DNA from: Podarcis muralis
Lineage: Eukaryota
Reading direction: 5' to 3'
Assembly (NCBI RefSeq): GCF_964188315.1
Contig: NC_135656.1
Span: forward strand, 120,714,001 to 120,778,000
DNA: 64,000 bases
The first letter of the stretch is position 1. Each line of letters opens with the position of its first letter. A program made the translations under genes and the position numbers. The notes below the pieces were generated by a model. The model made no database searches and was not told the DNA's origin. It saw only the letters and a program-made list of their open reading frames with translations. Positions 1 to 64,000 of this stretch are shown here, in pieces.

Positions 1-720
1 CTGCTCCACTTGTGAGGCCCCTCCCCACCCCCCACCCTCACAGCTAGAAGAAAATGAAAGAGTGTTATAAACAGAACTGAATGAAGACAAGGATGCTCAA
101 GGATATTTAAAATTCTGCAATTCTCAATTTCTCCTCTAAAGGACATAATATGTTATTGTTAAACACCATGGTGATTTTTTAAAAATGGGGAAAAAAAATA
201 ACACTGAAAAACTTTTGCAGTACCTGAACTTCGTAAACCTTTTGTGGAAGAAGCATTATTTTTTAGGAAAATGAAGTTGCAATGTTATTCTTTAAAAAAC
301 CCACACACCTTGAGTTTACAAATTATATTGCCTGGGAAGTGTAAATAATATGATCATGATTACCTGACAGTGTGGCACTTCTAGAATTTACTTTACGTTG
401 TCATTAAAAAGTCAGTTTTAAAATACATATTAAGAAGTAAACTACAACCATCAAATACAGTAAGGCTAAAATGTTTTCCTCTCCTAGCCTTCCTCATAGG
501 AAAATCTTCATCAAAATTTGTTTGTCTAAGTTTGTCACTTTCAGTGTACAGAATGCTCAGTGCGGACAACCTTTCTTGAGACATTGTGGCCCTTAATTCA
601 TTTTTAATTCTTTTGAGTCTTGAAAAAAATCCTCTCTCCTGAGCAGCTAGTGACCATAGGGCTAAGAAATAGCTGCAAGATTGCTTCCACATTAGGAAAG
701 GACACCTGGTGTTTTCCCTT
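1..720 (-). mobile_element. Decayed hAT transposon 3' end (C-terminal dimerisation-domain remnant)
   Basis: Frameshifted FPNVEAIL..VTSCSGE..SRLKRIKNELRATMSQERLSALSIL..DF..RKARR on the - strand, matching the hAT dimerisation region; the terminus lies just left of the window. Confidence 0.8.
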
Positions 721-1617
721 GTATATAATTTGATAAAGATGAGACAGAGACTTCTCTGCTGTTTACAATCCAGGGGTATATAAGATTTCTGAAATAAAGT
801 TTCCTGCAATGCAGGAATCAGAACGCGATCCTTTGCAGCCCTTTCAACTCTGCAGTTCTGTAATTCTGTGCGATATATATATATAAGACATTGCATATAT
901 AAATTGCAATTTCAGCTGAATTTGTGGGAACCACTTGAAGCATCCCTTGTGTTGAGCCATTTCCATTGCATTTGTTTATTTCCTCGTTGCAAACAGCTGA
1001 AAGTCTGTAAATGTTGATAATCAACTTGATTTTCAGTGGGTGGTTGAATAATTATAATTGCTACTGTAGATACATGCATATAGATTACATAGGTTTTGCC
1101 AGCCTTGGCTTCTTTCCTCTCCACCCCACCCCTTTTACATTTGCAAATGAAGCCAATCAAGCCAGGTAATTGCCCAGGGCATTCCCCATTGTTAAGCAGA
1201 TTTAAGGTGAGGCTGGTGACCTACTTTTCTGCCCTCAAAGACTTGTTGCCCTCCAGACCCCCAGGGGTCAAGTTAGTGATTAATTGGATTAGTTCAGTTT
1301 CACAGCTACACCCTCATAGCTTTTGCCAACCTGGGATGTCCTTTTAAATTTAGTCAGGAGTGTGTCTGGATATAAGTGAAGATTCTTTCTACCCTCTGCA
1401 AGGCAGGGTATGTTTGAAGTTTCAACACTCCAGGTGTTACAAGTCACAAGAACATTATTTTATTCTTCTTGTAAACCACTCTGTGAGGTTTTTGTGTCAA
1501 ACAAGCAGTATATAAATTTTAAGAAATGAATCATTTTGCCATTTCTGGGGCTTATAGACTGCCTTTCATACATCAGTGTAGAGGTATACAAATTAAAAAT
1601 GAAATGAAATATTTCCT

Positions 1618-2253
1618 ATTGGGAAATGATATATAATGAACTGATGAAAATATTGAAAACAACCTTTGTAAAAAAACAACCAGAAGCTTTCTTACTAGGT
1701 ATTTTTGGCCAAGACATACCAAAAGAAAAGAGGACCTTATTTATGTATGCCACTACAGCAGCAAGAATGTTGATTGTACAAAACTGGAAGACTGGAGAAA
1801 TGCCAACTAAAGAACAATGGCAAGAGAAGTTGATGAACTATGCAGAACTGGCAAAATCAACAGATAGATTAATAGAAAAAGACAACAGAGACTATGAAAA
1901 AGAATGGGAACCATTTATATTATACTTGCAGAAACAAAGAAAGTCGAAAGACTTGATGGCAGGATTTAAATAAACATTCACACTATTAGTGTTAGAAAAC
2001 GTGTAGAAGATAGAGAAATATTATGGCGTATTTACTTTTACTTTTATGTTTTTAGGTTTGATGTTATGTTATTAATAACTTTTTCTGTAAGGAGGTAGCA
2101 AAGTGGGTGAAAGGAGAAACAAACCGGAAGCGGAAGTTGGGGGAAGCCTAGGAGAGGAGGGAGGAAGGAATACATAGTAAATGTAAAGAATTTGAGATGT
2201 ATGTAATGAATGAAAAAGAAAAATGAATAAAATTTTTATATATAAAAAAAGAC
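1618..2253 (+). mobile_element. 5'-truncated L1-clade LINE (ORF2 C-terminus + 3'UTR), unit 1 only
   Basis: ORF 1626-1973 (W..IYNEL..EAFLLG..LFMYATTAAR..W..W) followed by a 3'UTR ending aataaa...aaaaaaa; absent from units 2-4. Confidence 0.82.
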
Positions 2254-2662
2254 GTTTCAACATTCCAGGTGTTACAGGTCATAAGAACATTATTTTATTC
2301 TTCTTGTAAATCACTCTGTGGGGTTTTCGTGTCAAACAAGCGGTATATAAATTTTGAGAAATAAATCATTTTGCCATTTCTGGGGCTTACAGACTGCCTT
2401 TTATACATCAGTGTAGAGGTATACAAATTAAAAATTGAAATGAAATATTTCCTTTTAGTTTTGTAAAGGAATGTTAACAGAGAATATTTATTCAACACAC
2501 ACATTAAATAAACAAGGGCATTTTTCACTGACCTGGCTGCATTTGGAAATATTTAATATAGAGGTCAATTTCATGTAGGTGCATATATGTGCATCTTAGA
2601 GGGCTTGTATTTATGTTTACTGTATCCATAATGCGAACTGATGGTGACATTCGATTATTCAT

Positions 2663-2663
<1 letters not shown>

Positions 2664-2703
<40 letters not shown>
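2664..2703. repeat. (ATT)n microsatellite
   Basis: Pure trinucleotide run; length varies in the other units (near 20200, 38505, 56640). Confidence 0.95.
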
Positions 2704-2705
<2 letters not shown>

Positions 2706-2931
2706 TTTGTGGAACTTGCAATTATTTATTTTTCATGCAAATAAATCACCTTCCTGAGAAATCGTATGAACAGAGGCAATAAATATACAAACAAATATCA
2801 GAAGCACAAACACACATAAGAAGGTAGGAAGAATCATAGAATTGTAGAGTTAGAAGAGACCCCAGAGGGTCATCTAGTCCAACCCCCTGCAATGCAGGAA
2901 TGCCTGCTGGATCAGGCCAGCGGCCCATCTA

Positions 2932-3190
2932 CCATATTTTTTGCTCTATAAGACGCACCAGACCACAAGATGCACCTAGTTTTTGGAGGAGGAAAACAAG
3001 AAAAAATATATTCTGAATCTCAGAAGCCAGAACATCAAGAAGGATCGCTGCGCAGTGAAAGCAGCAATCCCTCTTGCTGTTCTGGCTTCTGAGATAGCTG
3101 AGCAGCCTGCATTCGCCCCATAAGACGCACACACATTTCCCCTTACTTTTTAGGAGGGAAAAAGTGAGTCTTACAGAGTGAAAAATACAG
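2932..3190. mobile_element. Tc1/mariner (pogo/Tc2-type) MITE, unit 1 only
   Basis: Degenerate TIRs ccatattttttgctctataagacgcac / gtgagtcttacagagtgaaaaatacag with TA duplication; empty site ccatcTAgttttcac in units 3 and 4 (20462 cctatcTAgttttcac in unit 2). Confidence 0.85.
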
Positions 3191-3299
3191 TAGTTTTCAC
3201 AGTGGTAGCCCGCAACCAGGAACTAGTTTGTTTGTCATTGGCATCCATCTAACTCGAAAGATAATGGAGTGTGCTTGCAGGGGTGAAGTCAAACTGCTG

Positions 3300-3480
3300 C
3301 AATAGCAGCACGGAAGTGACCTCCCAAAGCAGCATCTGTGCACGCGCGGGTTGATTTCGGCGCTTCTGCGCATGTACAACTGCCGAAACCCAGAAGTAGC
3401 CTGTTCTGGTACTTCCAGGTTTCGGTGGTCTGCAACCCGAAAAAACGCAACCTGAAGCGGCTGTAACCCGAGGTGTGGCT
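3300..3480 (-). mobile_element. Degenerate mariner/Tigger-like MITE fragment
   Basis: Ends in tgtaacccgaggtatgact-like terminus (best preserved at 20772-20790); internal gcgcatg palindromes; the other end could not be defined. Confidence 0.55.
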
Positions 3481-3575
3481 ATAATAACAATATGATTCTA
3501 AGGTTTGTCCACTGTGTGAGCTATTTTATGCTTAGTGACAGAGTCACTGTGCCTGAAGCTTCTGGCTTAAACTTC

Positions 3576-3950
3576 AGCTTAGTTGGTAGAGCTCCAGGCG
3601 TCAGCAAACTTTTTCAGCAGGGGGCCGGTCCACTGTCCCTCAGACCTTGTGGGGGGCCGGACTATATTTTGGAAAAAAAATATGAACGAATTCCTATGCC
3701 CCACAAATAACCCAGAGATGCATTTTAAATAAAAGCACACATTTTACTCATGTAAAAACACGCTGATTCCCAGGCCGGATTTAGAAGGCGATGGGGCCTG
3801 ATCCAGCCCCCGGGCCTTAGTTTGCCTACCCATGCTCTAGACTCTTAATCTCAGGGTTTTGGGTTCAAGCTCCATCTAAGGCAAAAGATTCCTGCATTGC
3901 AGTGGGTTTGACTAGATGACCCTAATGGTCCCTTCCAACTCTGCAATTCT
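3576..3950 (+). mobile_element. tRNA-Lys-derived SINE with CR1-like tail (interrupted by the hAT MITE)
   Basis: A-box-like cttagttggtagagc, then actcttaatctcagggttttgggttcaagc, then a tail gattcctgcattgc...ttccaactctgcaattct. Confidence 0.7.
3595..3834 (+). mobile_element. Non-autonomous hAT MITE inserted into a tRNA-derived SINE
   Basis: Ends caggcgtcagcaaact / agtttgcctacccatg; splits the SINE head (agttggtagagc...actcttaatctcagg). Also at 20904-21143, 39195-39434, 57347-57579. Confidence 0.8.
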
Positions 3951-4056
3951 TAGTAAGAGCAGTTCAACAGCGGACTACCTGGGAATGTTATGGATTGCTT
4001 CCATGGAGGTTTATAAGCAGAGGCTGGATGGCCCTCTGTCATGGATGCTTCAGCTG

Positions 4057-4399
4057 TAAAGGTAAAAGGTAAAGGGACCCCTGACCGTTAGGTCCAGTCA
4101 TGACCGACTCTGGGGTTGCGACGCTCATCTCACTTTACTGGCCGACGGAGCCGGCGTACAGCTTCTGCGTCATGTGGCCAGCATGACTAAGCCGCTTCTG
4201 GCGAACCAGAGCAGCGCACGGAAACGCCGTTTACCTTCCCACCAGAGCGGTACCTATTTATCTACTTGCACTTTGACGTGCTTTCGAACTGCTAGGTTGG
4301 CAGGAGCAGGGACCGAGCAACGGGAGCTCACCCCGTCGCGGGGATTCAAACTGCCAACCTTCTGATCGGCAAGCCTTGGCCTCAGTGGTTTTTAGACCA
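4057..4399 (-). mobile_element. Sauria SINE, full length
   Basis: Recognisable Sauria SINE body with (acctttt)n-type tail; cagctg duplicated at 4051 and 4400; inserted in a CR1-like tail fragment. Confidence 0.9.
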
Positions 4400-4615
4400 C
4401 AGCTGAGATTCCTACATTGCAGTGGGTTGGACTAGATGACCCTTGGTGACCCCTTAGAACTCTATGATTCTATGATTGAAAGAGCCAGGGGGTAGTGCAG
4501 GACCTGGGTTCAAATCCTCACTCTCAGCCCTACCTACTTCACAGGGTTGTTGTTGGTGATTAAATGTGAAAAGCCCTGCATGCCAACTTTTTTGCTTCTT
4601 GGTGGAAAAGGCAGG

Positions 4616-4651
4616 AAATAAATAAAATAAAATAAAATAAAATAAAATAAA
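4616..4651. repeat. (AAAAT)n microsatellite
   Basis: Pentanucleotide run; longer at ~21917-21978 and ~58361-58426; coincides with the N gap in unit 3. Confidence 0.95.
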
Positions 4652-4859
4652 GACAGACCCCCCCCCCCAAGTGCGGTCTGCAAATGGTACCTGAGCCCAA
4701 CATCCCTCTCCCCATCTGCAATTCCTGGCAACTGACATTCACAGAATCATCGGGTTGCAGCGTTGGAACCAAAGGCTCATCTAATTCACCCCCCTACAAG
4801 AAGCTCCTTGGATGGGGGAAAAATAGAGAAGTGAATTAGATAAATGCAATAAACAAACA

Positions 4860-7260
4860 GCGCCCATATTTTTCAAATAGCGTGCTCGGGATCTGAAAAC
4901 CAGCCTGGGGCGTTAAACTCTCTCAAGTCTCCCGCTTTGATCCGAACAAGGTCAAAGCTCTCCATTCCGTGGTTGGGTGGGGGTAGGAGAGGGGGCGACG
5001 ACTTGGGAGGTCGCCACGCCTCCTGCCCTGCAACGACCCCACCCTTCTTTTCGGCAGCCGTGACTATTTATACCCTTAGTTTGCAAAGCTTTCTCACACG
5101 CGTTTGCGGGGTCGAGGATAGATCGCTGTCTTTTCTTCTCTGGGGAACGTGTGGATTACTGTACTGGAAATCATCTTTCGTCCAGCTTCCAGCAGCGCCC
5201 CTTTGGCTACAGAGAGTAGGATCGTCTGCCTAAAACCCTGAGGTTGGTTCCTTTTTACAATTGCTATGAAGTCTTTTTTTTCTTCAAATTGCCCACGTAG
5301 CCAGATTTAGCTTAAACCGCTCGGTTGTACTGGGTTTAAGCGAGACATGGCTGCAGCGGCGATTTGAAAAACACAATTGCGCACTGTAAACACGTTAACG
5401 CATTGGCAGGATTTTAAGAACACTTGTAATTTTAGTAATAACAAATTTAGTTGGAATCGAAGGTGCTGCTACTGGAAGGATTTTTTTATTATTATTTTGC
5501 TTCGACTACGGCAAAATAATTTTTGATTTTGATTAAAAATCAAAATACAGGCTACCTACCTGTAACTTGTAATTTTAGGGACACTATAGAAAATCTGAAG
5601 GAAAAAAATATGGTAAAGGAACCAGGAGGGGGGGAGGAAAGTCACGGGATTCAGGGAATCCCGGGGGGGCGGGCGGTTTAATATTGCTTTAGTATATTTT
5701 TGTATTTTTCATTTTTTGTTACTGTGTGTTTTTATTCTGTATAAAACCTAGTAAAATGTTATATATTTTCGCATTACGAAAGGCAGTCCAAAACATCCAG
5801 AGGGCAAGCCGTTGCAGTTATTTGAAATTATGTTCTGCAAATAACAGCATCGGCTTGCCCTTTCGATGACTGCGACTACCTTTCGTAATGCGAAACCTCC
5901 AGAGGTCTAGCAACTTGGCGTGCGCTCCCGTTGACGCAGGGATTTGCTCCGGGGAAAAGCGGAGTGTGTGTGGCTCTGTCCCAATTGATAGATCCGATCT
6001 TTAAAAATCAAATAGAGATGGGAGTAGCGGGATTGGGGGCCTGGACAGAGAGGGGAGTTTTCTGAAAACTTTTGCCGGCAACCAGAAACTCTTTTCTCTC
6101 TCTCCCGACACCGCCGTCGCCAAAAAGGGATGTTTGGCACGTTGGGGAACCAGGGGCGGACTGCATTGCAAGAAGGGTCAGTGGCGCAGCATATGCCGTC
6201 GCTGCCCAGGGCAGGCGCGTTCCCAAGGGGCGCGGGGGGCGCGCTCCGAGGGGCGCGGAGAGTGCGCTCCCAGGCGCGGGATAGCCGCGCGCGCGCACCC
6301 ACCGATCCGGCTTCCTTCCCGCTCTCTCCCTTGCTTGCTTGCCTGCCTCCTCCAGCTCTGAGCGCGGGGCAATTGCGCACCACCTGCCCGTGACTCCCGC
6401 GCCTACAGCCAGGGGAAGGCGAGAGCTGCTGCTGCTGCGCGCTCCCGGCTGGGGAAGGCAGGCAAGCAAGCAGGACGGGAAGGAGACGCGCGCGCACCCA
6501 CCGATCCGGCTTCCTTCCCGCTCTCTCCCCTGCTTGCTTGCCTGCCTCCTCCAGCCCTGAGCGCGGGGCAATTGCGCACCGCCTGCCCGTGACTCCCGCG
6601 CCTACAGTCAGGGGAAGGCGAGAGCTGCTGCTGCTGCGCGCTCCCGGCTGGGGAAGGCAGGCAAGCAAGCAGGACGGGAAGGAGACGCGCGCGCACCCAT
6701 CAATCCGGCTTCCTTCCCGCTCTCTCCCCTGCTTGCTTGCCTGCCTCTTCCAGCCCTGAGCCCGGGGCAATTGCGCACCGCCTGCCCGTGACTCCCGCGC
6801 CTACAGCCAGGGGAAGGCGGGAGCTGCTGCTGCTGCGCGCTCCCGGCTGGAGAAGGCAGGCAAGCAAGCAAGCAAGCAGGGGAGAGGACGGGAAGGAGAC
6901 GGGCAAAGCGGCACAGCAGCAAGAAGCTGTAAAAATGTGTGTTTGGAAAGCGGGGAGGCGAAAGCCCTGGGGAAAAATTTGTCTGCACTCATGGGCTTAT
7001 TCAGGATTTTTGTTTGCTATGCGTTTTTCTTGCTTGGGTTCGGGCAGCTGCCACCCCCCCCCCCCACCACGCCGGCTGCGCCCATGCATGCAAAAGATTG
7101 TGAGGTTGAAAAGGAAATGCTTCAGGGAAACTTCTGCGTAACGACAGCCCTTCGGCCCCCCCTCGCTCATGCACGCGACCTATCTAGGCTCCGTTTCTCG
7201 CTCTTTGAAATCTTAAGACGTGGGTAGGCAAACTTAAGGCCCAGTTGCCTTCCGGACGGT
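4860..7260. promoter_or_regulatory. CpG island, probable promoter region of gene copy 1
   Basis: Dense CpG retained in all four units, ~2.7 kb upstream of the first coding acceptor; GC box ggggcgga near 6153. The TSS is not defined. Confidence 0.6.
6288..6900. repeat. GC-rich VNTR, 3 x 199 bp
   Basis: gcgcgcaccc recurs at 6291, 6490 and 6689. Confidence 0.95.
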
Positions 7261-7438
7261 CGCGGAATCGGCGTATTTTTACATGAGTAGAATGTGCAGT
7301 TTTATTTAAAATGCATCTCTGGGTTATTTGTGGGGCATAGGAATTCGTTCATTCCCTCCCCCCCCCAAATATAGTCTCCCCCCCAGGGTCTGAGGGACAG
7401 TGGTCCGGTCCCCTGCTGAAAAGGTTTGCTGACCCCTC
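7219..7438 (-). mobile_element. Non-autonomous hAT MITE (same family as 3595-3834, opposite orientation)
   Basis: 8-bp TSD tcttaaga at 7211 and 7439; also at 24337-24560; right end eroded in units 3 and 4. Confidence 0.88.
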
Positions 7439-7939
7439 TCTTAAGATGTTCTGCCCTTGAATGCTGAGAAACCCCTTTTGCATCCCGTTGGGAGAAAACT
7501 GAATGGGCAACTTTCAATTAGAAGCAGGGAAGATCTTTGCTCCCAGCCCCCTTTAGAGCTATTTCATAGTCAACTCCCCCTCCATCAAAGGCATGAACCC
7601 TTCTCATGATACTATATTCCCATCCTGACTTTTAAACATGCCAGTGTCCATTTTTATTACTCCAGTTTGTATCCAACTAAGAACAAGTAGTTCATAGCTT
7701 TCTTAATTCCAGCAGGTCTCCTCTGAGCAAACCTGCTGAAATTAAGAAACCTATGAACTTCTGTGGGGCCTACTCTGAGTAGGACTAGCATTGGGCACAA
7801 CGCCATATTTGTACGTTAGTTGCAAATTGCTTTGGCACTATTATTATTTATTGTGTAATGGGAGGTTATGTGTGACTGTGTGTGCAAGTGTAAACACAAA
7901 ATATATACACAGCTCAAGTGTGTAAAACGAACAAATTTG

Positions 7940-8180
7940 TAGTGGTACCTTGGTTTACAACCATAATGTGTTCTGGAGGTCTGTTTGTAAACCAAAACAG
8001 GTTGTAACCCAAGGCATGCTTTCGCCAATGGGGCCTCCAAATATTTTTTCTCTCGTAATAATAAAAAAAGGGTTGTAATCCAAAAAAAGGTTGCAAACTG
8101 GGACACGCACTTCGGGGTTTGACGTGTTTGTAATCCAAAACGTATGCAAACCAGACTGTTTGCAAACCCAGGTACCACTG
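7940..8180. mobile_element. Tigger/mariner-like MITE
   Basis: TIRs tagtggtaccttggtttacaa / ttgcaaacccaggtaccactg followed by TA; present in all units (~25062, ~43597, ~61515). Confidence 0.8.
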
Positions 8181-9985
8181 TAGTTAAAAGCAAATATTGA
8201 AAACATTCAGAAGATTAAAATCCAGGGCAGTTAGTAAGAAAGGAAACACTTCTACATGTCAGGATTACATGGTGTGTTACAGAAATTAATGGAAAATTTC
8301 TAAAAATTTGTTGCCCCCCCCCCCCCCGCTAAATGCATTACACATAAAGTTAAGGGAGAAAAAGAGATGTTCAACAAATGGTTTTCCTCTGAGGTAAAGT
8401 TAAATTAGCTCTAGAAATGTACTGCAAAAAAACCAGTCATTTTTATCTTTCTTTATTAAAAAAATAAATGTCTGGATAGGCTTGCCTAAACAAAAATGTT
8501 TTAAGTGGGTGCTGAAAATAATTCAGCAAGGATGCCTGTTTGGTGTCAATAGACAGGCAGTTCCAAAGTTTAGGTGTTACCACACCCTGCATCAATTTAG
8601 CACCTCTTTTTGCTCACCTGTATTTAAATTGTTCTATGTATATTTTTGGGAGGGGCCATTGGTCAGTCTCATCTGGGGTGCAGTTGTCTGGGGTTGCAGG
8701 GGGCGAGTGGGTGGTAGACCCATTACGTTTTGGGGAGCAGGGTCCCTAAGACAGCATCCCAGGAGCCCCAGCACCCCAAAGGCGACTTCTGCCTCACCAC
8801 TGCAAAGTGCTGGTGCTATTTGCCCTCTTAGTAGCTAAATAGGTGCTTATATGCAGACTCACTGCAAAACATGGTCTGGAGCTTCATTAACTGCAAACCC
8901 TGAAATTTGGGGGCCCCTCCAAACTGGTGCCAAAGTTTTGCAATCCTTTCGCACTGCCCCTGAACCGTGTAATTGACTAGCCCCTGGTTCATAGTAATAC
9001 ATCAAACTGGGATCGCTAGAACAGGCATAGGCAAACTCGGCCCTCCAGATGTTTTGGACATTGGGTTTATTTGGTTAGATTTACAGATTATAGCCATCAT
9101 CCCTGACCACTGGTCCTGCTAACTAGGGATCATGGGAGTTATAAGTTCTGTGTTTTTAAAAAATGTTCTTTTTTTTCACATCCAGACATTTAATAATGTT
9201 ACGCCATTCTAAATTTCAATCACACCACAGTTGCCTGTTCTGTAATGTGAAAGGAAGGTTAGAAATGTAGATCCTGCCTTGTTTAGTGTTGTAGCACCTA
9301 CTCTACTTGCCTTCTGATCAAGCGCTTTTACGGCGCTTTTACGGTTGAGGGAATTTTAATAAGTTTTAGTTTTTTCGAAAAAATGTTTCAAAATGCAATG
9401 GGGTACCCTCCCTTGATGTTACAGTATTATCTTTTTTAAATTGATTTGAGGCTTTTAAAAAGCACACACAAAAAACCCAAGCAGTATAGAAATTCTATGA
9501 AATAAATTAATGCTATATTTCCAATAGTTTCTGAAACAGTGCCATGACCACACATGTTTCCTATTTCTGATGTGAGGCTTTTGCTTGTGGAAGAAAGTGC
9601 AGCAACAGGAAAAAATTGTATGTGTGTGTGTGGGGGGAAACACATGGTTTGGAGAAGAGTAAGTGACAAACTTGCAGAGAATAAAATCAACTTTTCTGCA
9701 AATCATCTGCACCTTGTTGTGAGTTGCAATCACTATGAGGTCCAAAAGACCTTGGGGATCAGTACAGAACCTGCAGGTTCTGACTTGGGAAATAAGGAGT
9801 TTCCAGCAACTTGGATGAATCCAAAAACTACAGTGCACATTTAAGCTCATACAAATTGCCTTCCATTAAATTTCAATGGGTGCTTCTATTGAAAAGCAGT
9901 GATTGATTGATTTTCTCTCTCTTTCTCTCCCACCAGAAAAAACTAGACTCTGCTGGATTGCTTCACAGTGACTGCCTCTTGCAGA

Positions 9986-51457: not shown

Positions 51458-52149
51458 ACATCGAGGTTTTGGTGGAATGCATACGTTAATTCGCATTACA
51501 AAACTTGCACTTGGGAGAAACTCAACGGCCCTCCAGCTGTTTTGGGACTACACTTCCCATCATCCCTGACCACTGGTCCTGTTAACTAGGGATGATGGGA
51601 GTTGTAGTTCCAAAATACCTGGGGGGCCAAGTTTGCCTATGCGTGGATAGTGGAGCGTGGATATTCTGGTATCCCTTCAAGAGAAAGCACATGAATAACT
51701 ACAGCAACCTTCACAATCTGGTGCCCTCCAAATGTTTTGGACTACAATTCTCATCGGCCGCGTGCATCACAGCCACTGGGTTCCCCCAAAGAACATGGGT
51801 GGTGTTTTGTCTTTTGTAGCAAAAATCCACCTTCCCACCAAAATACAGAACAACCACATAGGATTTGCACCAACCTGGAGCTACGATACTTTTGAATATT
51901 CATTTATTACAGTCCTGTTGTATTTGAAAGGAACTATTGGACAGCACTTTGATTGACTTGTTTATTTCTAGAGTCACGTTTTCTCTTACTGGCATTGCAT
52001 TGCGGTAGGATGTGAGGTTTTTCATCGTTTCTGTGGCTCCTGGGCTGCCTCATGTGTAGCAGGCAAGCCTACTAAACCACAAATGCAATGCAATGAGCTA
52101 TTTCTGCTTAGTTTTATACACAGCACACACATTTTGATAAATAACGACC

Positions 52150-53110: not shown

Positions 53111-53250
53111 AAAATAGGTCTTGGAGATGCCAGTTTTGTGCGGATGCCTTTTGGATATCTAGACTGGATTTGAACACATCAAAGAAGAGTTTCAATTAAA
53201 CGTGTTGTAAATTTAAACAGGGAAATCCGGGAGGGAAAGATGGGACTCCA

Positions 53251-53281
53251 CAGCGCCATCTGGTGGCAGTGTTATATTGCA
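53251..53281 (-). promoter_or_regulatory. CTCF-binding site, unit 3 (2-bp shorter spacer)
   Basis: Core identical; spacer to TGCAAT is 9 nt. Confidence 0.72.
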
Positions 53282-53988
53282 TACACAACACTTTCTTTAT
53301 CAGCCTAGCAGAGTCCTTAATGTGATGAGCACTATGTATATAATGTGTTGTTTGTATTCTTATTTTGTTACTATTTGTATTTGTTATATAAGGTTATTTT
53401 TTATCTGTTGAATTTGCAAATAAACGGTTTTTTTAAATGAAACAAAATTTTTTTGGGTGGGGGATTGTGTTATATGATCTCGGCAGCCACTCCCAGTCAC
53501 CAGTCTAGCTGCCGCATTCTGGATTAGTTGTAGTTTCCGGGTCACCTTCAAGGTAGCCCTACGTACAGCGCATTGCGGTAGTCCAAGCGGGAGATAACCA
53601 GAGCATGCACCACTCTGGCGAGACGGTCCACAGGCTACATTCTCTTACAACACATTCTCTTGCCCTTCAGAAGAGAAGGACATCCCTTCCTTCTCCATCC
53701 CTTCCCCTTTGAGCTTCCTTATCTCCTGGAAACCTTGCCCTTGGTCTTCAGGATTCCCTGTTACCGACACTCCTATCTCTCAGTTGCTGGATCAAAACCA
53801 TTTTAAATGTAATCACTCCATTTTGGGGTGGTTATTATATTTACTGCATTTGTCAGACACTTTTTCTCAGTGGGAAAAAAAGAGTCTCAGAGCAACCTAA
53901 CCAGATAAACTAAAACAGATAAAACCAGATAATTAAAAACATCTAAAATGCTCATCCGGCAACATCCATGCTTTTATCTTGTATTTAT

Positions 53989-54390
53989 TTGTTGTTGTTT
54001 AGTTGCTTAGTCGTTTAGGACTCTTCGTGACCCCATGGACCAGAGCACGCCAGGCACTCCTGTCTTCCACTGCCTCCCGCAGTTTGGTCAAATTCATGCT
54101 GGTAGCTTCGACAACACTGTCCAACCATCTCGTCCTCTGTCGCCCCCTTCTCCTTGCGCCCTCCATCTTTCCCAGCATCAGGGACTTTTCCAGGGAGTCT
54201 TCTCTTCTCATGAGGTGGCCAAAGTATTGGAGCCTCAGCTTCACGATCTGTCCTTCCAGTGAGCAATCAGGGCTGATTTCCTTCAGAATGGAGAGGTTTG
54301 ATCTTCTTGCAGTCCATGGGACTCTCAAGAGTCTTCTCCAGCACCCTAATTCAAAAGCATCAATTCTTCGGCGATCAGCCTTCTTTATGG
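53989..54390 (-). mobile_element. 5'-truncated RTE-BovB LINE, unit 3 (undeleted)
   Basis: Same TSD; retains RRRGRQRTRWLD. Confidence 0.92.
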
Positions 54391-54649
54391 ATCTTGTATT
54401 TATAGTTTGCTTTTATTTTCATTTTATCCCAGAACTGCCCTGAGATCTTTTGATGAGAGATGGCATATAAATCTAATTGAAAAATAAAAAAAATAAAATT
54501 GGTTAAAAAAAATCCTACCCCACCTGATTAAAAGATGAGCAGCACCATGGAAGGCACCGGCTTGGGGGGGGGGGAAACACCTTTGGTGCCTGAAATACTT
54601 TCATCACATGATGAAAGGTTAGCTACTAGAGATAAAGCAATCAGTTAAT

Positions 54650-55410
54650 CAGGGCTGGATTTAGAAGAAGAGAGGCCCTGGGCTGCTCCACTTGTGAGGC
54701 CCCTCCCCACCCTCACAGCTAAAAGAAAATGAAAGAGTGTTATAAACAGAACTGAATGAAGACAAGGATGCTCAAGGGTATTTAAAATTCTGCAATTCTC
54801 AATTACTCCTCCAAAGGACATAAGATGTTATTGTTAAACACCATGGTGATTTTAAAATAATGCATAAAATTAACACTGAAAAACTTTTGCAGTAACTGAA
54901 CTTTGTACACCTTTTGTGGAAGCATTATTTTTTAGGAAAATGAAGTTGTAATGTTATTCTTTTTTTAAAAAAACACACATTGAGTTTACAAATATTGCCT
55001 GGGAAGTGTAAATAATATGTAAATAATATGTTCATGATTACCTGACAGTGTGGCACTTTTAGAATTTACTTTACGTTGTCATTAAAAAGTTTTAAAATAC
55101 GTAAACTACAACCATCAAATACAGTAAGTAAGAAGTAAACTACAACCATCAAATGCAGTAAGGCTAAAATGTTTCCCCCTGCTAGCCTTCCTCATAGGAA
55201 AATCATCCAAAACTTCATCAAAATTTGTTTGTCTAAGTTTGTACAGAATGCTCAGTGCGGACACCCTTTCTTGAGACATTGTGGCCCTTAATTCATTTTT
55301 AATTCTTTTGAGTCTTGAAAAAAATCCTCTCTCCTGAGCAGCTAGTGACCATAGGGCTAAGAAATAGCTGCAAGATTGCTTCCACATTAGGAAAGGACAC
55401 CTGGTGTCCC
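54650..55410 (-). mobile_element. Decayed hAT transposon 3' end, unit 4
   Basis: As above; retains DEVLDDF where the other units have a deletion. Confidence 0.8.
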
Positions 55411-56634
55411 TTGTATATAATTTGATAAAGATGAGACAGAGAGTTCTCTGCTGTTTACAATCCAGGGGTATATAAGATTTCTGAAATAAAGTTTCCTGCA
55501 ATGCAGGAATCAGAACGCGATCCTTTGCAGCCCTTTCAACTCTGCAGTTCTGTAATTCTGTGTGATATATATATATAAGACATTGCATATATAAATTGCA
55601 ATTTCAGCTGAATTTGCGGGAACCACTTGAAGCATCCCTTGTGTTGAGCCATTTCCATTGCATTTGTTTATTTCCTCGTTGCAAACAGCTGAAAGTCTGT
55701 AAATGTTGATAATCAACTTGATTTTCAGTGGGTGGTTGAATAATTATAATTGCTACTGTAGATACATGCATATAGATTACATAGGTTTTGCCAGCCTTGG
55801 CTTCTTTCCTCTCCACCCCACCCCTTTTACATTTGCAAATGAAGCCCATCAAGCCAGGTAATTGCCCAGGGCATTCCCCATTGATAAGCAGATGAAGGTG
55901 AGGCTGGTGACCTACTTTTCTGCCCTCAAAGTCAAAGACTTGTTGCCATCCAGACCCCCAGGGGTCAGGTTAGTGATTAATTGGATTAGTTCAGTTTCAC
56001 AGCCATAGCCTCACAGCTTTTGCCAACCTGGGATGTCCTTTTAAGTTTACAGATAGGTAGCCGTGTTGGTCTGCCATAGTCAAAACAAAAAAATATTCCT
56101 TCCAGTAGCTCCTACTGGAAGGAATATTTTTTTCTTTTAAGTTTAGTCAGGAGTGTGTCTGGATATAACTGAAGATTCTTTCTACCCTCTGCAAGGCAGG
56201 GTGTGTTTGAAGTTTCAACACTCCAGGTGCTACAGGTCATAAGAAGATTATTTTATTCTTCTTGTAAACCACTCTGTGAGGTTTTTGTGTCGGACAAGCA
56301 GTATCTAAATTGAGAATTTGAGAATTTGAGAGATGAATCATTTTACCATTTCTGGGGCTTACAGACTGCCTTTTATACATCAGTGTAGAGGTATACAAAT
56401 TAAAAATTGAAATGAAATATTTCCTTTTAGTTTTGTAAAGGAATGTTAACAGAGAATATTTATTCAACACACACATTAAATAAACAAGGGCATTTTTCAC
56501 TGACCTGGCTGCATTTGGAAATATTTAATATAGAGGTCAATTTCATGTAGGTGCATATATGGGCATCTTAGAGGGCTTGTATTTATGCTTACTGTATCCA
56601 TAATGTGAACTGATGGTGACATTCCATTATTCAT

Positions 56635-56684
<50 letters not shown>

Positions 56685-57801
56685 TCTTTGTGGAATTTGC
56701 AATTATTTATTTTTCATGCAAATAAATCACCTTCCTGAGAAATTGTATGAACAGAGGCAATAAATATACAAACAAACATCAGAAGCACAAACACACATAA
56801 GAAGGTAGGAAGAATCATAGAATTGTAGAGTTGGAAGAGACCCCAGGGGGTCATCTAGTCCAACCCCCTGAAATGCAGGAATGCCTGCTGGATCAGGCCA
56901 GTGGCCCATCTAGTTTTCACGGTGGAAGCCCACAACCAGGAACTAAGTTTGTTTGTCATTGGCATCCGTCTAACTCGAAAGACAATGGAGTGCGCTTGCA
57001 GGGGTGAAGTCAAACGGCTGCAATAGCAGCACGGAAGTGACCTCCCAAAGCAGCATCTGTGCACACGCGGGTTGATTTCGGTGCTTCTGTGCATGCGCAA
57101 AGTGCAATTTAGCGCTTCTGCGCATGTACAACCGCCGAAACCCGGAAGTCACCTGTTCCGGTACTTCCAGGTTCCGGTGGTCTGCAACCCGAAAAAACGC
57201 AACCTGAAGCGGCTGTAACCCGAGGTATGACTATAATAACAATATGATTCTAAGGTTTGTCCACTGTGTGAGCTATTTTATGCTTAGTGACAGAGTCACT
57301 GTGCCTGAAGCTTCTGACTTAAACTTCAGCTTAGTTGGTAGAGCTCCAGGCGTCAGCAAACTTTTTCAGCAGGGGGCCTGTCCCTCAGACCTTGTGGGGG
57401 GCCGGACTATATTTTGGAAAAAGAATATGAATGAATTCCTATGCCCCACAAATAACCCAGAGATGCATTTTAAATAAAAGCACACATTCTACTCATGTAA
57501 AAACACGCTGATTCCCAGGCCAGATTTAGAAGGCGATGGGGCCTGATCCAGCCCCCGGGCCTTAGTTTGCCTGCCCAGGCTCTAGACTCTTAATCTCAGG
57601 GTTTTGGGTTCAAGCTCCATCTTGGGCAAAAGATTCCTGCATTGCAGTGGGTTGGACTAGATGACCCTAATGGTCCCTTCCAACTCTGCAATTCTTAGTA
57701 AGAGCAGTTCAACAGCGGACTACCTGGGTACGTTGTGGATTGCTTCCATGGAGATTTACAAGCAGAGGCTGAATGGCCCTCTGTCATGGATGCTTCAGCT
57801 G

Positions 57802-58144
57802 TAAAGGTAAAGGGTAAAGGGACCCCTGACCGTTAGGTCCAGTCGTGACCGGCTCTGGGGTTGCGGCGCTCATCTCGCTTTACTGGCCGAGGGAGCTGGC
57901 GTACAGCTTCTGGGTCATGTGGCCAGCATGACTAAGCCGCTTCTGGCGAACCAGAGCAGCGCACGGAAACGCCGTTTACCTTCCTGCCGGAGCGGTACCT
58001 ATTTATCTACTTGCACTTTGACGTGCTTTCGAACTGCTAGGTTGGCAGGAGCAGGGACCAAGCAATGGGAGCTCACCCCGTCGCGGGGATTCAAACTGCC
58101 GACCTTCTGATCGGCAAGCCCTAGGCTCTGTGGTTTTTAGACCA
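57802..58144 (-). mobile_element. Sauria SINE, unit 4
   Basis: Orthologous position; cagctg duplication. Confidence 0.9.
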
Positions 58145-60056
58145 CAGCTGAGATTCCTACATTGCAGTGGGTTGGACTAGATGACCCTTGGTGACCCCTT
58201 AGAACTCTATGATTCTATGATTGAAAGAGCCAGGGGGTAGTGCAGGACCTGGGTTCAAATCCTCACTCTCAGCCCTACCTACTTCACAGGGTTGTTGTTG
58301 GTGATTAAATGTGAAAAGCCCTGCATGCCAACTTTTTTGCTTCTTGGTGGAAAAGGCAGGAAATAAATAAAATAAAATAAAATAAAATAAAATAAAATAA
58401 AATAAAATAAAATAAAATAAAATAAAGACAGACCCCCCCCCCAAGTGCGGTCTGCAAATGGTACCTGAGCCCAACATCCCTCTCCCCATCTGCAATTCCT
58501 GGCAACTGACATTCACAGAATCATCGGGTTGCAGCGTTGGAACCAAAGGCTCATCTAATTCACCCCCCTACAAGAAGCTCCTTGGATGGGGGAAAAAAAG
58601 AGAAGTGAATTAGATAAATGCAATAAACAAACAGTGCCCATATTTTTCAAATAGCGTGCTCGGGATCTGAAAACCAGCCTGGGGCGTTAAACTCTCTCAA
58701 GTCTCCCGCTTTGATCCGAACAAGGTCAAAGCTCCCCATTCCGTGGTTGGGTGGGGGTAGGAGAGGGGGCGACGACTTGGGAGGTCGCCACGCCTCCTGC
58801 CCTGCAACGACCCCACCCTTCTTTTCGGCAGCCGTGACTATTTATACCCTTAGTTTGCAAAGCTTTCTCACACGCGTTTGCGGGGTCGAGGAGAGGTCGC
58901 TGACTTTTCTTCTCTGGGGAACGTGCGGATTACTGTACTGGAAATCATCTTTCGTCCGGCTTCCAGCAGCGCCCCTTTGGCTACAGAGAGTAGGATCGTC
59001 TGCCTAAAACCCTGAGGTTGGTTCCTTTTTACAATTGCTATGAAGTCTTTTTTTCCTTCAAATTGCCCACGTAGCCAGATTTAGCTTAAACCGCTCGGTT
59101 GTGCTGGGTTTAAGCGAGACATGGCTGCAGCGGCGATTTGAAAAACACAATTGCGCACTGTAAACACGTTAACGCATTGGCAGGATTTTAAGAACACTTG
59201 TAATTTTAGTAATAACAAATTTAGTTGGAATCTAAGGTGCTGCTACTGGAAGGATTTTTTTAATTATTATTTTGCTTCGACTACGGCAGACCAACACGGC
59301 TACCTACCTGTAACTTGTAATTTTAGGGACACTATAGAAAATCTGAAGGAAAAATAAGATATGCAGTAGAAAAAAATATGGTAAAGGAACCAGGAGAGGG
59401 GGGGAGGAAAGTCACGGGATTCAGGGAATCCCGGGGGGGCGAGCGGTTTAATATTGCTTTAGTATATTTTTGTATTTTTCATTTTTGTTACTGTGTGTTT
59501 TTATTCTGTATAAAACCTAGTAAAATGCTATATATTTTCGCATTACGAAAGGCAGTCCAAAACATCCAGAAGGCAAGCCGATGCAGTTATTTGAAATTAT
59601 GTTCTGCAAATAACAGCATCGGCTTGCCCTTTCGATGACTGCGACTACCTTTCGTAATGCGAAACCTCCAGAGGTCTGGCAACTTGGCGTGCGCTCCCGT
59701 TGAAGCAGGGATTTGCTCCGGGGAAAAGCGGAGTGTGTGTGGCTCTGTCCCAATTGATAGATCCGATCTTTAAAAATCAAATAGAGATGGGAGTAGCGGG
59801 ATTGGGGGCCTGGACAGAGAGGGGAGTTTTCTGAAAACTTTTGCCGGCAACCAGAAACTCTTTTCTCTCTCTCCCGACACCGCCGTCGCCAAAAAGGGAT
59901 GTTTGGCACGTTGGGGAACCAGGGGCGGACTGCATTGCAAGAAGGGTCAGTGGCGCAGCATATGCCGTCGCTGCCCAGGGCAGGCGCGTTCCCAAGGGGC
60001 GCGGGGGGCGCGCTCCGAGGGGCGCGGAGAGTGCGCTCCCAGGCGCGGGATAGCCG

Positions 60057-60471
60057 CGCGCGCGCACCCACCGATCCGGCTTCCTTCCCGCTCTCTCCCT
60101 TGCTTGCTTGCTTGCCTGCCTCCTCCAGCTCTGAGCGCGGGGCAATTGCGCACCGCCTGCCCGTGACTCACGCGGCTACAGTTCAGGGGAAGGCGAGAGC
60201 TGCTGCTGCTGCGCGCTCCCGGCTGGGGAAGGCAGGCAAGCAAGCAGGACGGGAAGGAGACGCGCGCGCACCCATCAATCCGGCTTCCTTCCCGCTCTCT
60301 CCCCTCCTTGCTTGCCTGCCTCCTCCAGCCCTGAGCGCGGGGCAATTGCGCACCGCCTGCCCGTGACTCCCGCGCCTACAGTCAGGGGAAGGCGAGAGCT
60401 GTTGCTGCTGCGCGCTCCCGGCTGGAGAAGGCAGGCAAGCAAGCAAGCAGGGGAGAGGACGGGAAGGAGAC
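60057..60471. repeat. GC-rich VNTR, 2 x ~204 bp
   Basis: Recurs at 60060 and 60264. Confidence 0.95.
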
Positions 60472-63400
60472 GGGCAAAGCGGCACAGCAGCAAGAAGCTG
60501 TAAAAATGTGTGTTTGGAAAGCGGGGAGGCGAAAGCCCTGGGGAAAAATTTGTCTGCACTCATGGGCTTATTCAGGATTTTTGTTTGCTATGCGTTTTTC
60601 TTGCTTGTTGTTCGGGCAGCTGCCCCCCCCCCCCCCCCCCCGCCGGCTGCGCCCATGCATGCAAATGCAACAGATTGTGAGGTTGAAAAGGAAACGCTTC
60701 AGGGAAACCTCTGCACAACGACAGCCCTCGGCCCCCCCTCGCTCATGCACGCGACCTATCTAGGCTCCGTTTCTTGCTCTTTGAAATCTTAAGACGTGGG
60801 TAGGCAAACTTAAGGCCCAATTGCCTTCTAAATGCGGCCCGCGGACGGTCCCGGAATCGGCGTATTTTTGCATGAGTAGAATGTGCAGTTTTATTTAAAA
60901 TGCATCTCTGGGTTATTTGTGGGGCATAGGAATTCGTTCATTCCCTCCCCCCCCCCAAATATAGTCTCCCCCCCCAGGGTCTGAGGGACAGTGGACCGGT
61001 CCCCTGCTGTTCTGCCCTTGATGTTCTGCCCTTGAACCCGGAGAAACCCCTTTTGCATCCCGTTGGGAGAAAACTGAATGGGCAACTTTCAATTAGAAGC
61101 AGGGGAGATCTTTGCTCCCACCTCCCTTTAGAGCTATTTCATAGTCAACTCCCCCTCCATCAAAGGCATGAACCCTTCTCATGATACTATATTCCCATCC
61201 TGACTTTTAAACATGCCAGTGTCCATTTTTATTACTCCAGTTTGTATCCAACTAAGAACAAGTAGTTCATAGCTTTCTTAATTTCTGCAGGTCTCCTCTG
61301 AGTAAACCTGCTGAAATTAAGAAACCTATGAACTTCTGTGGGGCCTACTCTGAGTAGGACTAGCATTGGGCACAACGCCATATTTTTACGTTAGTTGCAA
61401 ATTGCTTTGGCACTATTATTATTTATTGTGTAATGGGAGGTTATGTGTGACTGTGTGTGCAAGTGTAAACACAAAATATGTACACAGCTCGAGTGTGTAA
61501 AACAAACAAATTTGTAGTGGTACCTTGGTTTACAACCATAATCTGTTCCGGAGATCTGTTTGTAAACCAAAACAGGTTGTAACCCAAGGCATGCTTTCGC
61601 CAATGGGGCCTCCAAATTTTTTCTCTCGTAATAATAAAAAAAGGGTTGTAATCCAAAAAAAGGTTGCAAACTGGGACACGCACTTCGGGGTTTGACGTGT
61701 TTGTAATCCAAAACGTATGCAAACCAGACTGTTTGCAAACCCAGGTACCACTGTAGTTAAAAGCAAATATTGAAAACATTCAGAGGATTAAAATCCAGGG
61801 CAGTTAGTAAGAAAGGAAACACTTCTACATGTCAGTATTACATGGTGTGTTACAGAAATTAATGGAAAATTTCTAAAAATTTGTTCCCCCCCCCCCCCCC
61901 CCGCTAAATGCATTACACATAAAGTTAAGGGAGAAAAAGAGATGTTCAACAAATGGTTTTCCTCTGAGGTAAAGTTAAATTAGCTCTAGAAATGTACTGC
62001 AAAAAAACCAGTCATTTTTATCTTTCTTTATTAAAAAAATAAATGTCTGGATAGGCTTGCCTAAACAAAAATGTTTTAAGTGGGTGCTGAGAATAATACA
62101 GCGAGGATGCCTGTTTGGTGTCAATAGACAGGCAGTTCCAAAGTTTAGGTGTTACCACACACTGCATCAATTTAGCACCTCTTTTTGCTCACCTGTATTT
62201 AAATTGTTCTATGTATATTTTTGGGAGGGGCCATTGGTCAGTCTCATCTGGGGTGCAGTTGTCTGGGGTTGCAGGGGGGCGAGTGGGTGGTAGACCCATT
62301 ACGTTTTGGGGAGCAGGGTCCCTAAGACAGCATCCCAGGAGCCCCAAAAGCATATTCTGCCTCACCACTGCAAAGTGCTGGTGCTATTTGCCCTCTTAGT
62401 AGCTAAATAGGTGCTTATATGCAGACTCACTGCAAAACATGCTCTGGAGCTTCATTAACTGCAAACCCTGAAATTTGGGGGCCCCTCCAAACTGGTGCCA
62501 AAGTTTTGCAATCCTTTCGCACTGCCCCTGAACCGTGTAATTGACTAGCCCCTGGTACATAGTAATACACCAAACTGGGATCGCTAGAACAGGCATAGGC
62601 AAACTCGGCCCTCCAGATGTTTTGGACATCGGTTTTATTTGGTTAGATTATAGCCATCATCCCTGACCACTGGTCCTGCTAACTAGGGATCATGGGAGTT
62701 ATAAGTTCTGTGTTTTTAAAAAATGTTCTTTTTTCACATCCAGACATTTAATAATGTTACGCCATTCTAAATTTCAATCACACCACAGTTGCCTGTTCTG
62801 TAATGTGAAAGGAAGGTTAGAAATGTAGATCCTGCCTTGTTTAGTGTTGTAGCACCTACTCTACTTGCCTTCTGATCAAGCGCTTTTACGGCTTAGAAGT
62901 TGAGGGAATTTTAATAAGTTTTAGTTTTTTCAAAAAAACGTTTCAAAATACAATGGGGTTCCCTCCCTTGATGTTACAGTATTATCTTTTTTAAATTGAT
63001 TTGAGGCTTTTAAAAAGCACACACAAAAAACCCAAGCGGTATAGAAATTCTATGAAATAAATTAATGCTATATTTCCAATAGTTTCTGAAACAGTGCCAT
63101 GACCACACATGTTTCCTATTTCTGATGTGAGGCTTTTGCTTGTGGAAGAAAGTGCAGCAACAGGAAAAATTTGTGGGGGGGGCACATGGTTTGGAGAAGA
63201 GTAAGTGACAAACTTGCAGAGAATAAAATCAACTTTTCTGCAAATCATCTGCACCTTGTTGTGAGTTGCAATCACTATGAGGTCCAAAAGACCTTGGGGA
63301 TCAGTACAGAACCTGCAGGTTCTGACTTGGGAAATAAGGAGCTTCCAGCAACTTGGATGAATCCAAAAACTACAGTGCACATTTAAGCTCATACAAATTG

Positions 63401-63528
63401 CCTTCCATTAAATTTCAATGGGTGCTTCTATTGAAAAGCAGTGATTGATTGATTTCTCTCTCTCTTTCTCTCCCTCCAGAAAAAACTAGACTCTGCTGGA
63501 TTGCTTCACAGTGACTGCCTCTTGCAGA

Positions 63529-64000
63529 ATGGGCAACCTGCAGAATAAGATGGAGAGGACAAACGAAAGGAACTGGTTGGGACCACAGTTCAGCATGAAA
63601 GAGGCATGGAGTGGTTCCCAAAACCCTATGGAAGAATCTCCACTGGAGCCTTCCCAAGAGGATGATAAGAATTTCGTCCTGGCATTGGAGAGCAGCATGG
63701 AAGAAGAGAAGGAACCGTCCAGTTCTGACGTGCTGAACTTGCCGCTTCCAGCGCAAGCAGAAGCACATTGTGGCCAGGTTCCCCTGAACAGCACCCCAGG
63801 CGAGGTCCCAAAGCTGCGTAGAAGCAGGCGCCTCCTAAGACAGTCCTCCTCCACGTCGCTTGAGCCAGAGGACACCACCACTATGGAGCCACCAGCAAAA
63901 AGGCAGAGGATCTCTTTCGTGTGGAGATACTTCACGACAACAAGCAAATTTGTGGTCCAGTGCCGTGTCTGCCATAGGGCCGTTCGCCTTGGGAGGCCTG
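63529..64000 (+). CDS. Copy 4 coding exon 1, 5' part (runs off the window inside BED1)
   Basis: Acceptor ccctccag/63480, ATG at 63529 ([10 protein letters not shown]...), open to the window end. Confidence 0.9.
   Translation, partial: MGNLQNKMERTNERNWLGPQFSMKEAWSGSQNPMEESPLEPSQEDDKNFVLALESSMEEEKEPSSSDVLNLPLPAQAEAHCGQVPLNSTPGEVPKLRRSRRLLRQSSSTSLEPEDTTTMEPPAKRQRISFVWRYFTTTSKFVVQCRVCHRAVRLGRP

Follow-up and report, generated by a model that had tools for sequence, protein, structure and literature searches.

A transcription factor gene that is repeated head to tail in the genome of the wall lizard Podarcis muralis raises the question of whether its altered copies adjust the activity of the intact ones or are products of the ordinary growth of a zinc-finger gene family. 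Here, the locus was examined in a window of 64,000 nucleotides (OZ076955.1, 120,714,001-120,778,000), to which all positions below refer. Self-BLAST of the window returned collinear plus-strand matches with 92-98% identity at offsets of 17.1-18.5, 35.5-36.5, and 53.6-54.7 kb, corresponding to 3.5 head-to-tail units (U1 to U4) of ~18.2 kb each (Table 1). The tandem array of at least four ~18.2-kb copies described in the initial annotation is thereby confirmed, although only 3.5 of the units lie inside the window. The last of these was completed from the downstream locus L002, in which array homology stops at window-equivalent 70,676. This places the end of U4 6.7 kb past the window, and no fifth unit was detected downstream of U4 in this sequence beyond the window. 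The interpretation favored here, with a probability of about three in four, is that a single conserved lacertid gene was amplified in the P. muralis lineage specifically, yielding four such units that evolve by birth-and-death.

Each unit includes one CpG-island region and one six-exon gene. Under the six-exon model, splice sites are canonical throughout all four units, and exons 1 to 6 encode, in order, a BED finger (BED1), a degenerate BED-like repeat (BED2), a SCAN domain, a KRAB-A domain, and four C2H2 fingers together with one dead finger. BED1 (PF02892), a domain type of hAT origin, scored 28.4 bits, above the curated cut-off of 20.6, and has its Cys and His ligands, while the second BED-like repeat is without its second Cys. 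The SCAN profile (PF02023) was matched at positions 2-89/90 in U1, U2, and U3 (E 2e-36 to 4e-36), and the U4 domain is identical in protein sequence to those of the other units. The KRAB profile was matched at positions 1-42/42 with E values of 1.7e-18 (U1), 6.6e-16 (U2), and 9.2e-18 (U3). Four C2H2 fingers with TGEKP-type linkers were matched in every complete unit, and all lacertids share one degenerate position that lies between fingers 1 and 3. Pfam gave no match for exons 2, 3, and 5 or for the second BED-like repeat. An unbroken six-exon ORF was also observed in P. raffonei (880 aa) and P. lilfordi (877 aa) and in a pair of Zootoca copies (903 aa). Transposon-like ORFs were observed in the intergenic part and were likewise without a Pfam match. 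A U1 segment at 1353-2250 is common to P. lilfordi and is shortened in U2-U4.

Table 1. Units, genes, and other features of the array, in window positions.
Feature	Position	Strand	Remarks
Unit U1	1..18221	+	self-BLAST; left end cut by window edge, so array start may lie further left
Unit U2	18222..36521	+	self-BLAST
Unit U3	36522..54682	+	self-BLAST; N gap within
Unit U4, first 9.3 kb	54683..64000	+	remainder beyond window
199-bp minisatellite, U1	6277..6873		3 copies; GC-rich region upstream of gene
199-bp minisatellite, U2	23587-23918		about 2 copies
199-bp minisatellite, U3	42014-42613		3 copies
199-bp minisatellite, U4	60061-60382		about 2 copies
Assembly gap, 137 N	40216..40352		U3 non-coding DNA, 5.3 kb upstream of U3 start codon
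U1 exon 1	9986..11587	+	N-terminal region; BED1 10361-10519; degenerate BED2 10922-11077; SCAN 11306-11563
U1 exon 2	12386..12512	+	127 nt; IKQE motif; no Pfam match
U1 exon 3	12632..12735	+	
U1 exon 4	12841..12967	+	KRAB-A
U1 exon 5	14160..14249	+	
U1 exon 6	15369..15937	+	four C2H2 fingers and one degenerate finger, then stop codon
U2 gene	27090..34231	+	exons 27090-28697, 29488-29614, 29734-29837, 29922-30048, 32673-32762, 33654-34231
U2 KRAB-A codon CGG (Arg)	29970..29972	+	TGG (Trp) elsewhere; equivalent to Trp18 of ZNF93
U3 gene	45627..51457	+	exons 45627-47243, 48022-48149, 48269-48372, 48478-48604, 49839-49928, 50880-51457
U3 exon 2 extra base	48132..48135	+	within run of four G, adjoining C->A change; exon 128 nt vs 127
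U3 premature stop, exon 3	48318..48320	+	after canonical splicing
U4 exon 1 start (first 157 codons)	63529..64000	+	full 877-aa ORF intact in L002

The origin of the array can be placed by comparison with two congeners. P. raffonei (L003) and P. lilfordi (L004) each carry a single copy within the same flanks, and no internal tandem repeat was found in their 25.8-kb loci, which reach leftwards only to window-equivalent 557-760. In both loci, the downstream flank matches the DNA found past U4 in P. muralis. Since a single copy occupies the same flanks in both congeners, the amplification is attributed to the P. muralis lineage. Consistent with this, U1-U4 form a clade (100/99) relative to the two congeners in a star-like tree whose terminal branches measure 0.011-0.015 and whose stem measures 0.009. 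Squamates are already known to have undergone lineage-specific expansion of SCAN zinc-finger genes (10.1101/2025.03.03.638093). Between units, pairwise substitution divergence is 2.4-3%, about half of the distance to the congeners, and the units differ additionally by indels of about 0.9-1 kb; by rough scaling, the divergence of the units dates to ~10 My. The designation of the array as young thus holds in a relative sense only. The most closely related pair shifts along the unit, with U2-U3 (0.7%), U3-U4 (0.2%), and U1-U2 (0.9%) being closest in different 1-kb windows, and this mosaic identity points to exchange between units. The array would most likely have arisen by unequal crossing-over, with each unit bringing its own GC-rich upstream region, and segments have since been exchanged among the units.

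Several differences in the state of the copies had been reported in the initial annotation, and such differences are present. U1 was found to be fully intact, as claimed, with an ORF of 872 aa. U2 also encodes an intact ORF, corresponding to the annotated protein P0001 (877 aa), and the damage ascribed to its KRAB-A domain amounts to a single Trp to Arg substitution, at a residue that is required for silencing in human KRAB and that is kept in U1, U3, U4, and four orthologues. For U3, the annotation has a pair of proteins, P0125 (582 aa) and P0121 (289 aa), and the predicted product of this unit is a 598-aa protein that would comprise BED, SCAN, and exon 2. The annotations of U4 and Zootoca are split in a way that hints at transcripts with an end in intron 2. 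The U3 exons past the break are free of additional stops when read in frame. The truncation of this copy after SCAN is present in the assembly as a frameshift and a stop but is without clear independent read support; in Logan contigs, in which paralogues are collapsed and which break at this point, a form lacking one base at 48132 has a depth of 3.5 of 12.7. The finger helices differ among copies, as had been noted. At position 2 of finger 1, the ancestral Met persists in U4 and has been replaced by Lys in U1 and U2 and by Leu in U3; position 6 of the same finger changed from Lys to Arg in U4. A Gly to Val change occurs at position -2 of finger 4 in U2, and at position 1 of finger 5, U1 has Gly where U2-U4 have Arg. 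Every replacement in the finger region falls in a recognition helix.

The distribution of changes along the coding sequence is uneven. The SCAN domains, described previously as identical among copies, are the same at the protein level in U1-U4 despite silent differences, and the same is true of BED1: variable sites in these two modules are 10 silent and 0 replacement, compared to 34 silent and 69 replacement elsewhere (Fisher P = 4e-5). Overall dN/dS is 0.32-0.48. These counts indicate that selection is holding the BED1 and SCAN modules constant in every unit and that, outside of them, the copies evolve nearly neutrally, with linkers that drift in an almost neutral manner and with few finger changes, located in the DNA-reading helices. 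On the U3 branch, 5 silent and 5 replacement changes precede the break and 3 and 4, respectively, follow it, numbers too few for a test of relaxation in the KRAB-finger half.

Residues involved in silencing or in KAP1 contact have been listed, in ZNF93 numbering, as D8, V9, I11, F13, E17, W18, L21, Y29, V32, M33, E35, and N36 (PMC9753469). D8->E, I11->V, and Y29->H occur in all units, with W18->R in U2 in addition, and the other listed residues are kept. The Asp8 to Glu and Tyr29 to His changes, both at positions required for silencing in human KRAB (PMC9753469), are shared by all lacertid copies, so that these KRAB domains are only putative repressors. Moreover, the majority of SCAN-KRAB domains in humans fail to bind TRIM28 (10.1101/2025.03.03.638093).

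In the ~12% sampled from each of two raw RNA-seq runs (X23 and X24), the exons received no reads, and all matching reads fell on a high-copy repeat in intron 4. RNA contigs of run X15 include a transcript that is spliced in frame through all five introns with GT..AG boundaries and that carries the majority states along with six states present in no unit. Given these mixed states, the transcript was assigned to no particular unit. A U3-specific transcript was not seen among the X15 RNA contigs, which collapse paralogues. In DNA run X3, from a different study, a 1,064-nt contig is 99.8% identical to U3 exon 1, and further contigs carry the states of other units. It should be noted that the Logan contigs of both X15 and X3 collapse paralogues and hence yield no copy number for other individuals.

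The assembly gap within the array means that the unit count could be wrong, and tandem arrays are hard to assemble. If alternative haplotypes or mis-scaffolded contigs had been joined at this gap, the true locus might hold one or two copies. This is considered very unlikely. Every pair of units differs by more substitutions than is usual between alleles as well as by large indels, U1 and U2 lie on a single uninterrupted contig, and U4 continues into the single-copy flank found after the gene in both congeners. The gap is crossed by no reading frame, and its flanks are collinear with other units (on the left with U2 up to 21900, on the right from 22007). The X3 contig matching U3 exon 1, found in a run that also shows the states of other units, argues further against an artefact. 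In the current assembly, these four units are the only P. muralis members of the 90% protein cluster. Two proteins from an older P. muralis assembly (P0128 and P0129), for which no contig placement is on record, reach no more than 94-95% identity with any unit, indicating either that array content varies among individuals or lineages or that a further copy exists. It is also very unlikely that just a single unit still functions, with the remaining three being young pseudogenes. While the frameshift in U3, the loss of a key KRAB residue in U2, and a replacement-to-silent ratio in the linkers close to neutral would fit plain decay, complete ORFs (872-877 aa) and every splice site have survived in three of the four units over a span that rough scaling puts at ~10 My. 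Furthermore, BED1 and SCAN are free of replacements in every unit, and the U3 exons downstream of the break have acquired no additional stop in their own frame.

SCAN domains homo- and heterodimerise, and their identity in all units makes mixed dimers plausible. The array could accordingly be imagined, in line with the initial annotation, as an adaptive device of dosage and composition, with a full repressor (U1, U4), a weakened one (U2), and a finger-less decoy (U3) that use one SCAN interface and in which the ratio of mixed dimers tunes repression of targets common to them. Such a device would be in keeping with SCAN proteins that stay identical despite silent differences, with the lack of a replacement excess in the BED-SCAN part of U3, with the variable array content hinted at by the older-assembly proteins, and with the precedent of finger-less SCAN proteins that modulate SCAN zinc-finger factors, as SCAND1 does with MZF1 (PMC6627353). 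It is nevertheless considered unlikely. Only one transcript was seen, which is in frame over its full length, the extra base in U3 is assembly-derived, and the mRNA of U3, with a stop in the third of six exons, would likely be a target of nonsense-mediated decay. Every copy departs from the human KRAB consensus at Asp8 and Tyr29, and plain redundancy would itself predict the near-neutral drift seen outside the BED1 and SCAN modules, such that ordinary birth-and-death fits as well as tuning. Regarded as decidedly improbable is a variable allelic series in cis, in which lineages would differ in their numbers of full, KRAB-weakened, and BED-SCAN-only units and the mixture, through the shared SCAN domain, would determine how active a conserved BED/C2H2 regulator is; if this were true, the older-assembly proteins that match no unit would provide the earliest indication of it. 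Under the favored reading, amplification of one BED-finger/SCAN/KRAB/C2H2 transcription factor followed by the birth-and-death usual for zinc-finger clusters, the immediate effect is probably a higher dosage and a slight diversification of targets. The unit products would probably be able to pair, U2 has lost a Trp needed for silencing in human KRAB, and U3, according to the assembly, is reduced to a BED-SCAN protein.

Parts of this organization have counterparts in known systems. The predicted U3 product, which is without KRAB and C2H2 parts, resembles SCAND1, which pairs with MZF1 (PMC6627353, PMC9777339), in having SCAN without C2H2 fingers and could likewise act as a partner. Unlike SCAND1, it retains a BED finger and may still bind DNA, and its predicted form is due to frameshifting of a young paralogue rather than to an old dedicated gene. 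Host-transposase fusion transcription factors similarly combine a transposase-type DNA-binding domain with KRAB and SCAN in one protein (10.1101/2020.05.07.082677), although the name of the present gene was not found in the main text of that study. Clusters of KRAB/SCAN zinc-finger genes in mammals (PMC2443715) and squamates (10.1101/2025.03.03.638093) show the same head-to-tail duplication of whole genes, likewise with conserved effector domains, changes concentrated in recognition helices, and occasional loss of effectors or fingers. Growth of the array is the ordinary route of such gene families, and existing knowledge of these is unchanged by it. What sets the P. muralis case apart is that the amplified gene departs from the usual layout in carrying BED fingers in front of SCAN and that the array is very small and datable. 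It is a well-bounded example of zinc-finger family growth, from one gene in two congeners to four in the wall lizard, with units close enough for mutations (helix changes, loss of the KRAB Trp, and BED-SCAN truncation) to be ordered against outgroups. As such, it offers a convenient natural system for asking if SCAN pairing between young paralogues has a regulatory effect.

The array is an ordinary example, if one with neat limits, of a SCAN-KRAB zinc-finger gene amplified in a single species; lineage-specific expansions of such genes are already known in squamates (10.1101/2025.03.03.638093). On the Podarcis muralis record examined (OZ076955.1, assembly GCA_964188315.1, 120,714,001-120,778,000), k-mer offsets and self-BLAST revealed collinear plus-strand repeats at ~18.2, 36, and 54 kb, with 92-98% identity including gaps. 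The initial annotation had counted at least four copies in the window; there are indeed four units, termed U1 to U4, but the window itself holds only 3.5 of them, and U4 is completed outside. The locus obtained via the annotated U4 proteins reaches 15.6 kb past the window, where unit homology ends at window-equivalent position 70,676 and no fifth unit was found beyond U4. The left end of the array is cut off by the window edge. Since the only proteins from this assembly in the 90% protein cluster are those of these four units, the array likely totals four. This count rests on one scaffold join, because one contig runs from U1 through U2 into the beginning of U3 while another carries the remainder of U3 and U4, the two meeting at the only assembly gap in the window. 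In self-BLAST, U3 and U2 are collinear on both sides of the gap, as far as 40215 on the left (U2 21900) and from 40353 onwards on the right (U2 22007); the gap flanks are likewise collinear with U1 and U4. The gap lies in non-coding DNA and thus leaves all reading frames unaffected.

Searches with an annotated protein (tblastn) and alignment of the copies identified six coding exons per unit, with canonical donor and acceptor sites in all four units. The model is supported by an RNA contig from run X15 that is spliced across all five introns at exactly the GT..AG sites predicted. Pfam searches matched SCAN, zf-BED, KRAB, and C2H2 domains in every complete unit; these searches ran exon by exon, and joined exons were used only for frame checks and substitution counts, with U3 read through and an X placed at its frame break. 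By eye, a second BED-like repeat (10922-11077 and equivalents) is a clear duplicate of BED1. With the second cysteine missing from every lacertid copy and no Pfam match, it is probably no longer a zinc finger.

Features of the array in window coordinates, and organization of the gene in each unit
Feature	Position	Location	Description
Minisatellite	6277-6873, 23587-23918, 42014-42613, 60061-60382	GC-rich region upstream of each gene	199-200-bp repeats
U2-specific insertion	31439-32493	U2 intron 4	GC-rich, ~1.05 kb, 159-169-bp tandem repeats
Junction segments	17007-18221, 35301-36521, 53450-54682	between units	
N run	40216-40352	U3, non-coding, 5.3 kb upstream of start codon	sole one in window
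Exon 1		each unit	BED finger, degenerate second BED-like repeat, SCAN
Exon 2		each unit	127 nt, IKQE motif
Exon 3		each unit	short
Exon 4		each unit	KRAB-A, 127 nt
Exon 5		each unit	short
Exon 6		each unit	finger exon: four C2H2 fingers and one dead finger

A single family member is annotated in each of Podarcis raffonei and Podarcis lilfordi. Self-comparison of their 25.8-kb loci gave no tandem match, and past the gene their sequence continues into that found downstream of U4 in P. muralis. A maximum-likelihood tree of ~9 kb per copy placed U1-U4 in one clade (100/99) with the internal order unresolved; its terminal branches measured 0.011-0.015 and its stem 0.009. Scaled to the published estimate of 18-20 My for the P. 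muralis/P. lilfordi split (PMC10214862), the divergence among units would correspond to roughly 10 My in the absence of any sequence exchange. The units do exchange sequence: which pair is closest varies between successive windows, and stretches of 0.2-0.9% divergence lie beside stretches of 3-5%. Zootoca vivipara carries two copies 184 kb apart, and copy number in lacertids has therefore changed more than once.

Several non-coding differences accompany the units. The minisatellite comprises three repeats in U1 and in U3, but about two in each of U2 and U4; repeat number might affect promoter strength. U1 shares a ~900-bp segment (1353-2250) with the single copy of P. lilfordi, but ~160 bp of it are left in U2-U4; these three units therefore have a deletion in common, and U1 looks nearest to the ancestral upstream region. 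A 232-bp piece of the U2 insertion is 96% identical to P. raffonei sequence downstream of the gene (17510-17741 of that locus). The junction segment holds a retrotransposon-like ORF (17558-17981) with a 95% match in P. lilfordi and P. raffonei, ~8.6 kb past the gene, and this could be a trace of the duplication mechanism or merely a young dispersed repeat. In U3 intron 4, 48729-48818 is a short repeat of high copy number (contig depths sum to ~130,000 in a DNA run). Hundreds of RNA reads fit it partly and have diverse flanks, and it resembles a transcribed SINE-type element.

The copies differ in state. The U1 ORF is uninterrupted (872 aa), as the initial annotation had stated; that of U2 is also intact (877 aa). 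The KRAB-A of U2, described there as damaged, has Arg in place of a Trp kept in the other units, P. raffonei, P. lilfordi, and both Zootoca copies. This site corresponds to Trp18 of ZNF93, which is highly conserved and needed for silencing, yet outside the KAP1 interface (PMC9753469). A neighbouring Glu/Gly difference was rejected as damage, the position being variable among species. Truncation of the third copy after SCAN is predicted from the assembly. Exon 2 of U3 is 128 nt, with one extra base in a G run and an adjoining C-to-A change relative to the other units, and the difference is therefore more than bare homopolymer length. Under normal splicing the frame stops at 48318-48320, predicting a BED-SCAN product of 598 aa; the exons downstream of the break contain no stop in their own frame, and the public annotation splits the unit into 582-aa and 289-aa proteins. 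In DNA run X3, from another study, a contig of 1,064 nt matches U3 exon 1 at 99.8% identity, but contigs break at the frameshift site, where a form one base shorter has depth 3.5/12.7, and the reads speak neither for nor against the extra base. In all units the end of exon 1 and the start of exon 4 are both in phase 0, so skipping of exons 2 and 3 would leave every unit in frame, U3 included; the exon 1-exon 4 joint was not seen in the single available transcript contig. Under the six-exon model U4 is intact (877 aa) and annotated as 606 + 289 aa. Both Zootoca ORFs are intact (903 aa); the annotation gives them as BED-SCAN proteins, one of 567 aa and one of 598 aa, with a separate 296-aa KRAB-finger gene listed beside the latter. 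Such split annotation in U4 and Zootoca may reflect transcripts ending in intron 2 or an annotation artefact.

Two raw RNA-seq runs (~12% of each) gave no depth on any exon. The X15 contig, in which exon 2 ends in frame, combines mixed states, six of them absent from every unit. Two family proteins from an older P. muralis assembly, P0128 and P0129, each have Asp for His in KRAB-A; P0128 additionally has replacements in BED1 and SCAN, and P0129 begins in the shifted frame of exon 3. Their identity to each of U1-U4 is at most 94-95%, and the two assemblies thus seem to differ in array content. The array probably varies in content among individuals or lineages, unless there is a further copy.

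The claimed identity of the SCAN domains holds despite silent variation: across the four units, the variable sites of BED1 and SCAN together comprise 10 silent and no replacement sites, versus 34 silent and 69 replacement sites in the rest of the protein (Fisher P = 4e-5). Pairwise dN/dS among units is 0.32-0.48 over the whole protein; it falls to 0 in BED1 and SCAN and reaches ~0.5-1.5 in linkers. Finger helices also differ between copies, as proposed, with all five replacement sites of the finger region (four codons) falling within recognition helices, an enrichment based on small numbers and noted post hoc. Outgroups indicate Met at position 2 of finger 1 and Gly at position 1 of finger 5 as ancestral. 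Apart from these sites, Podarcis and Zootoca have the same helices, and the changes therefore cluster after duplication.

The majority of SCAN-linked KRAB domains do not recruit TRIM28 (10.1101/2025.03.03.638093). The KRAB domain here retains most key residues, but every lacertid copy carries Asp8 to Glu and Tyr29 to His, so that repression by the full-length protein is an assumption. The further proposal, that mixed SCAN dimers could tune repression, has a precedent in SCAND1 and MZF1 (PMC6627353). Identical SCAN domains would allow mixed dimers among the unit products.
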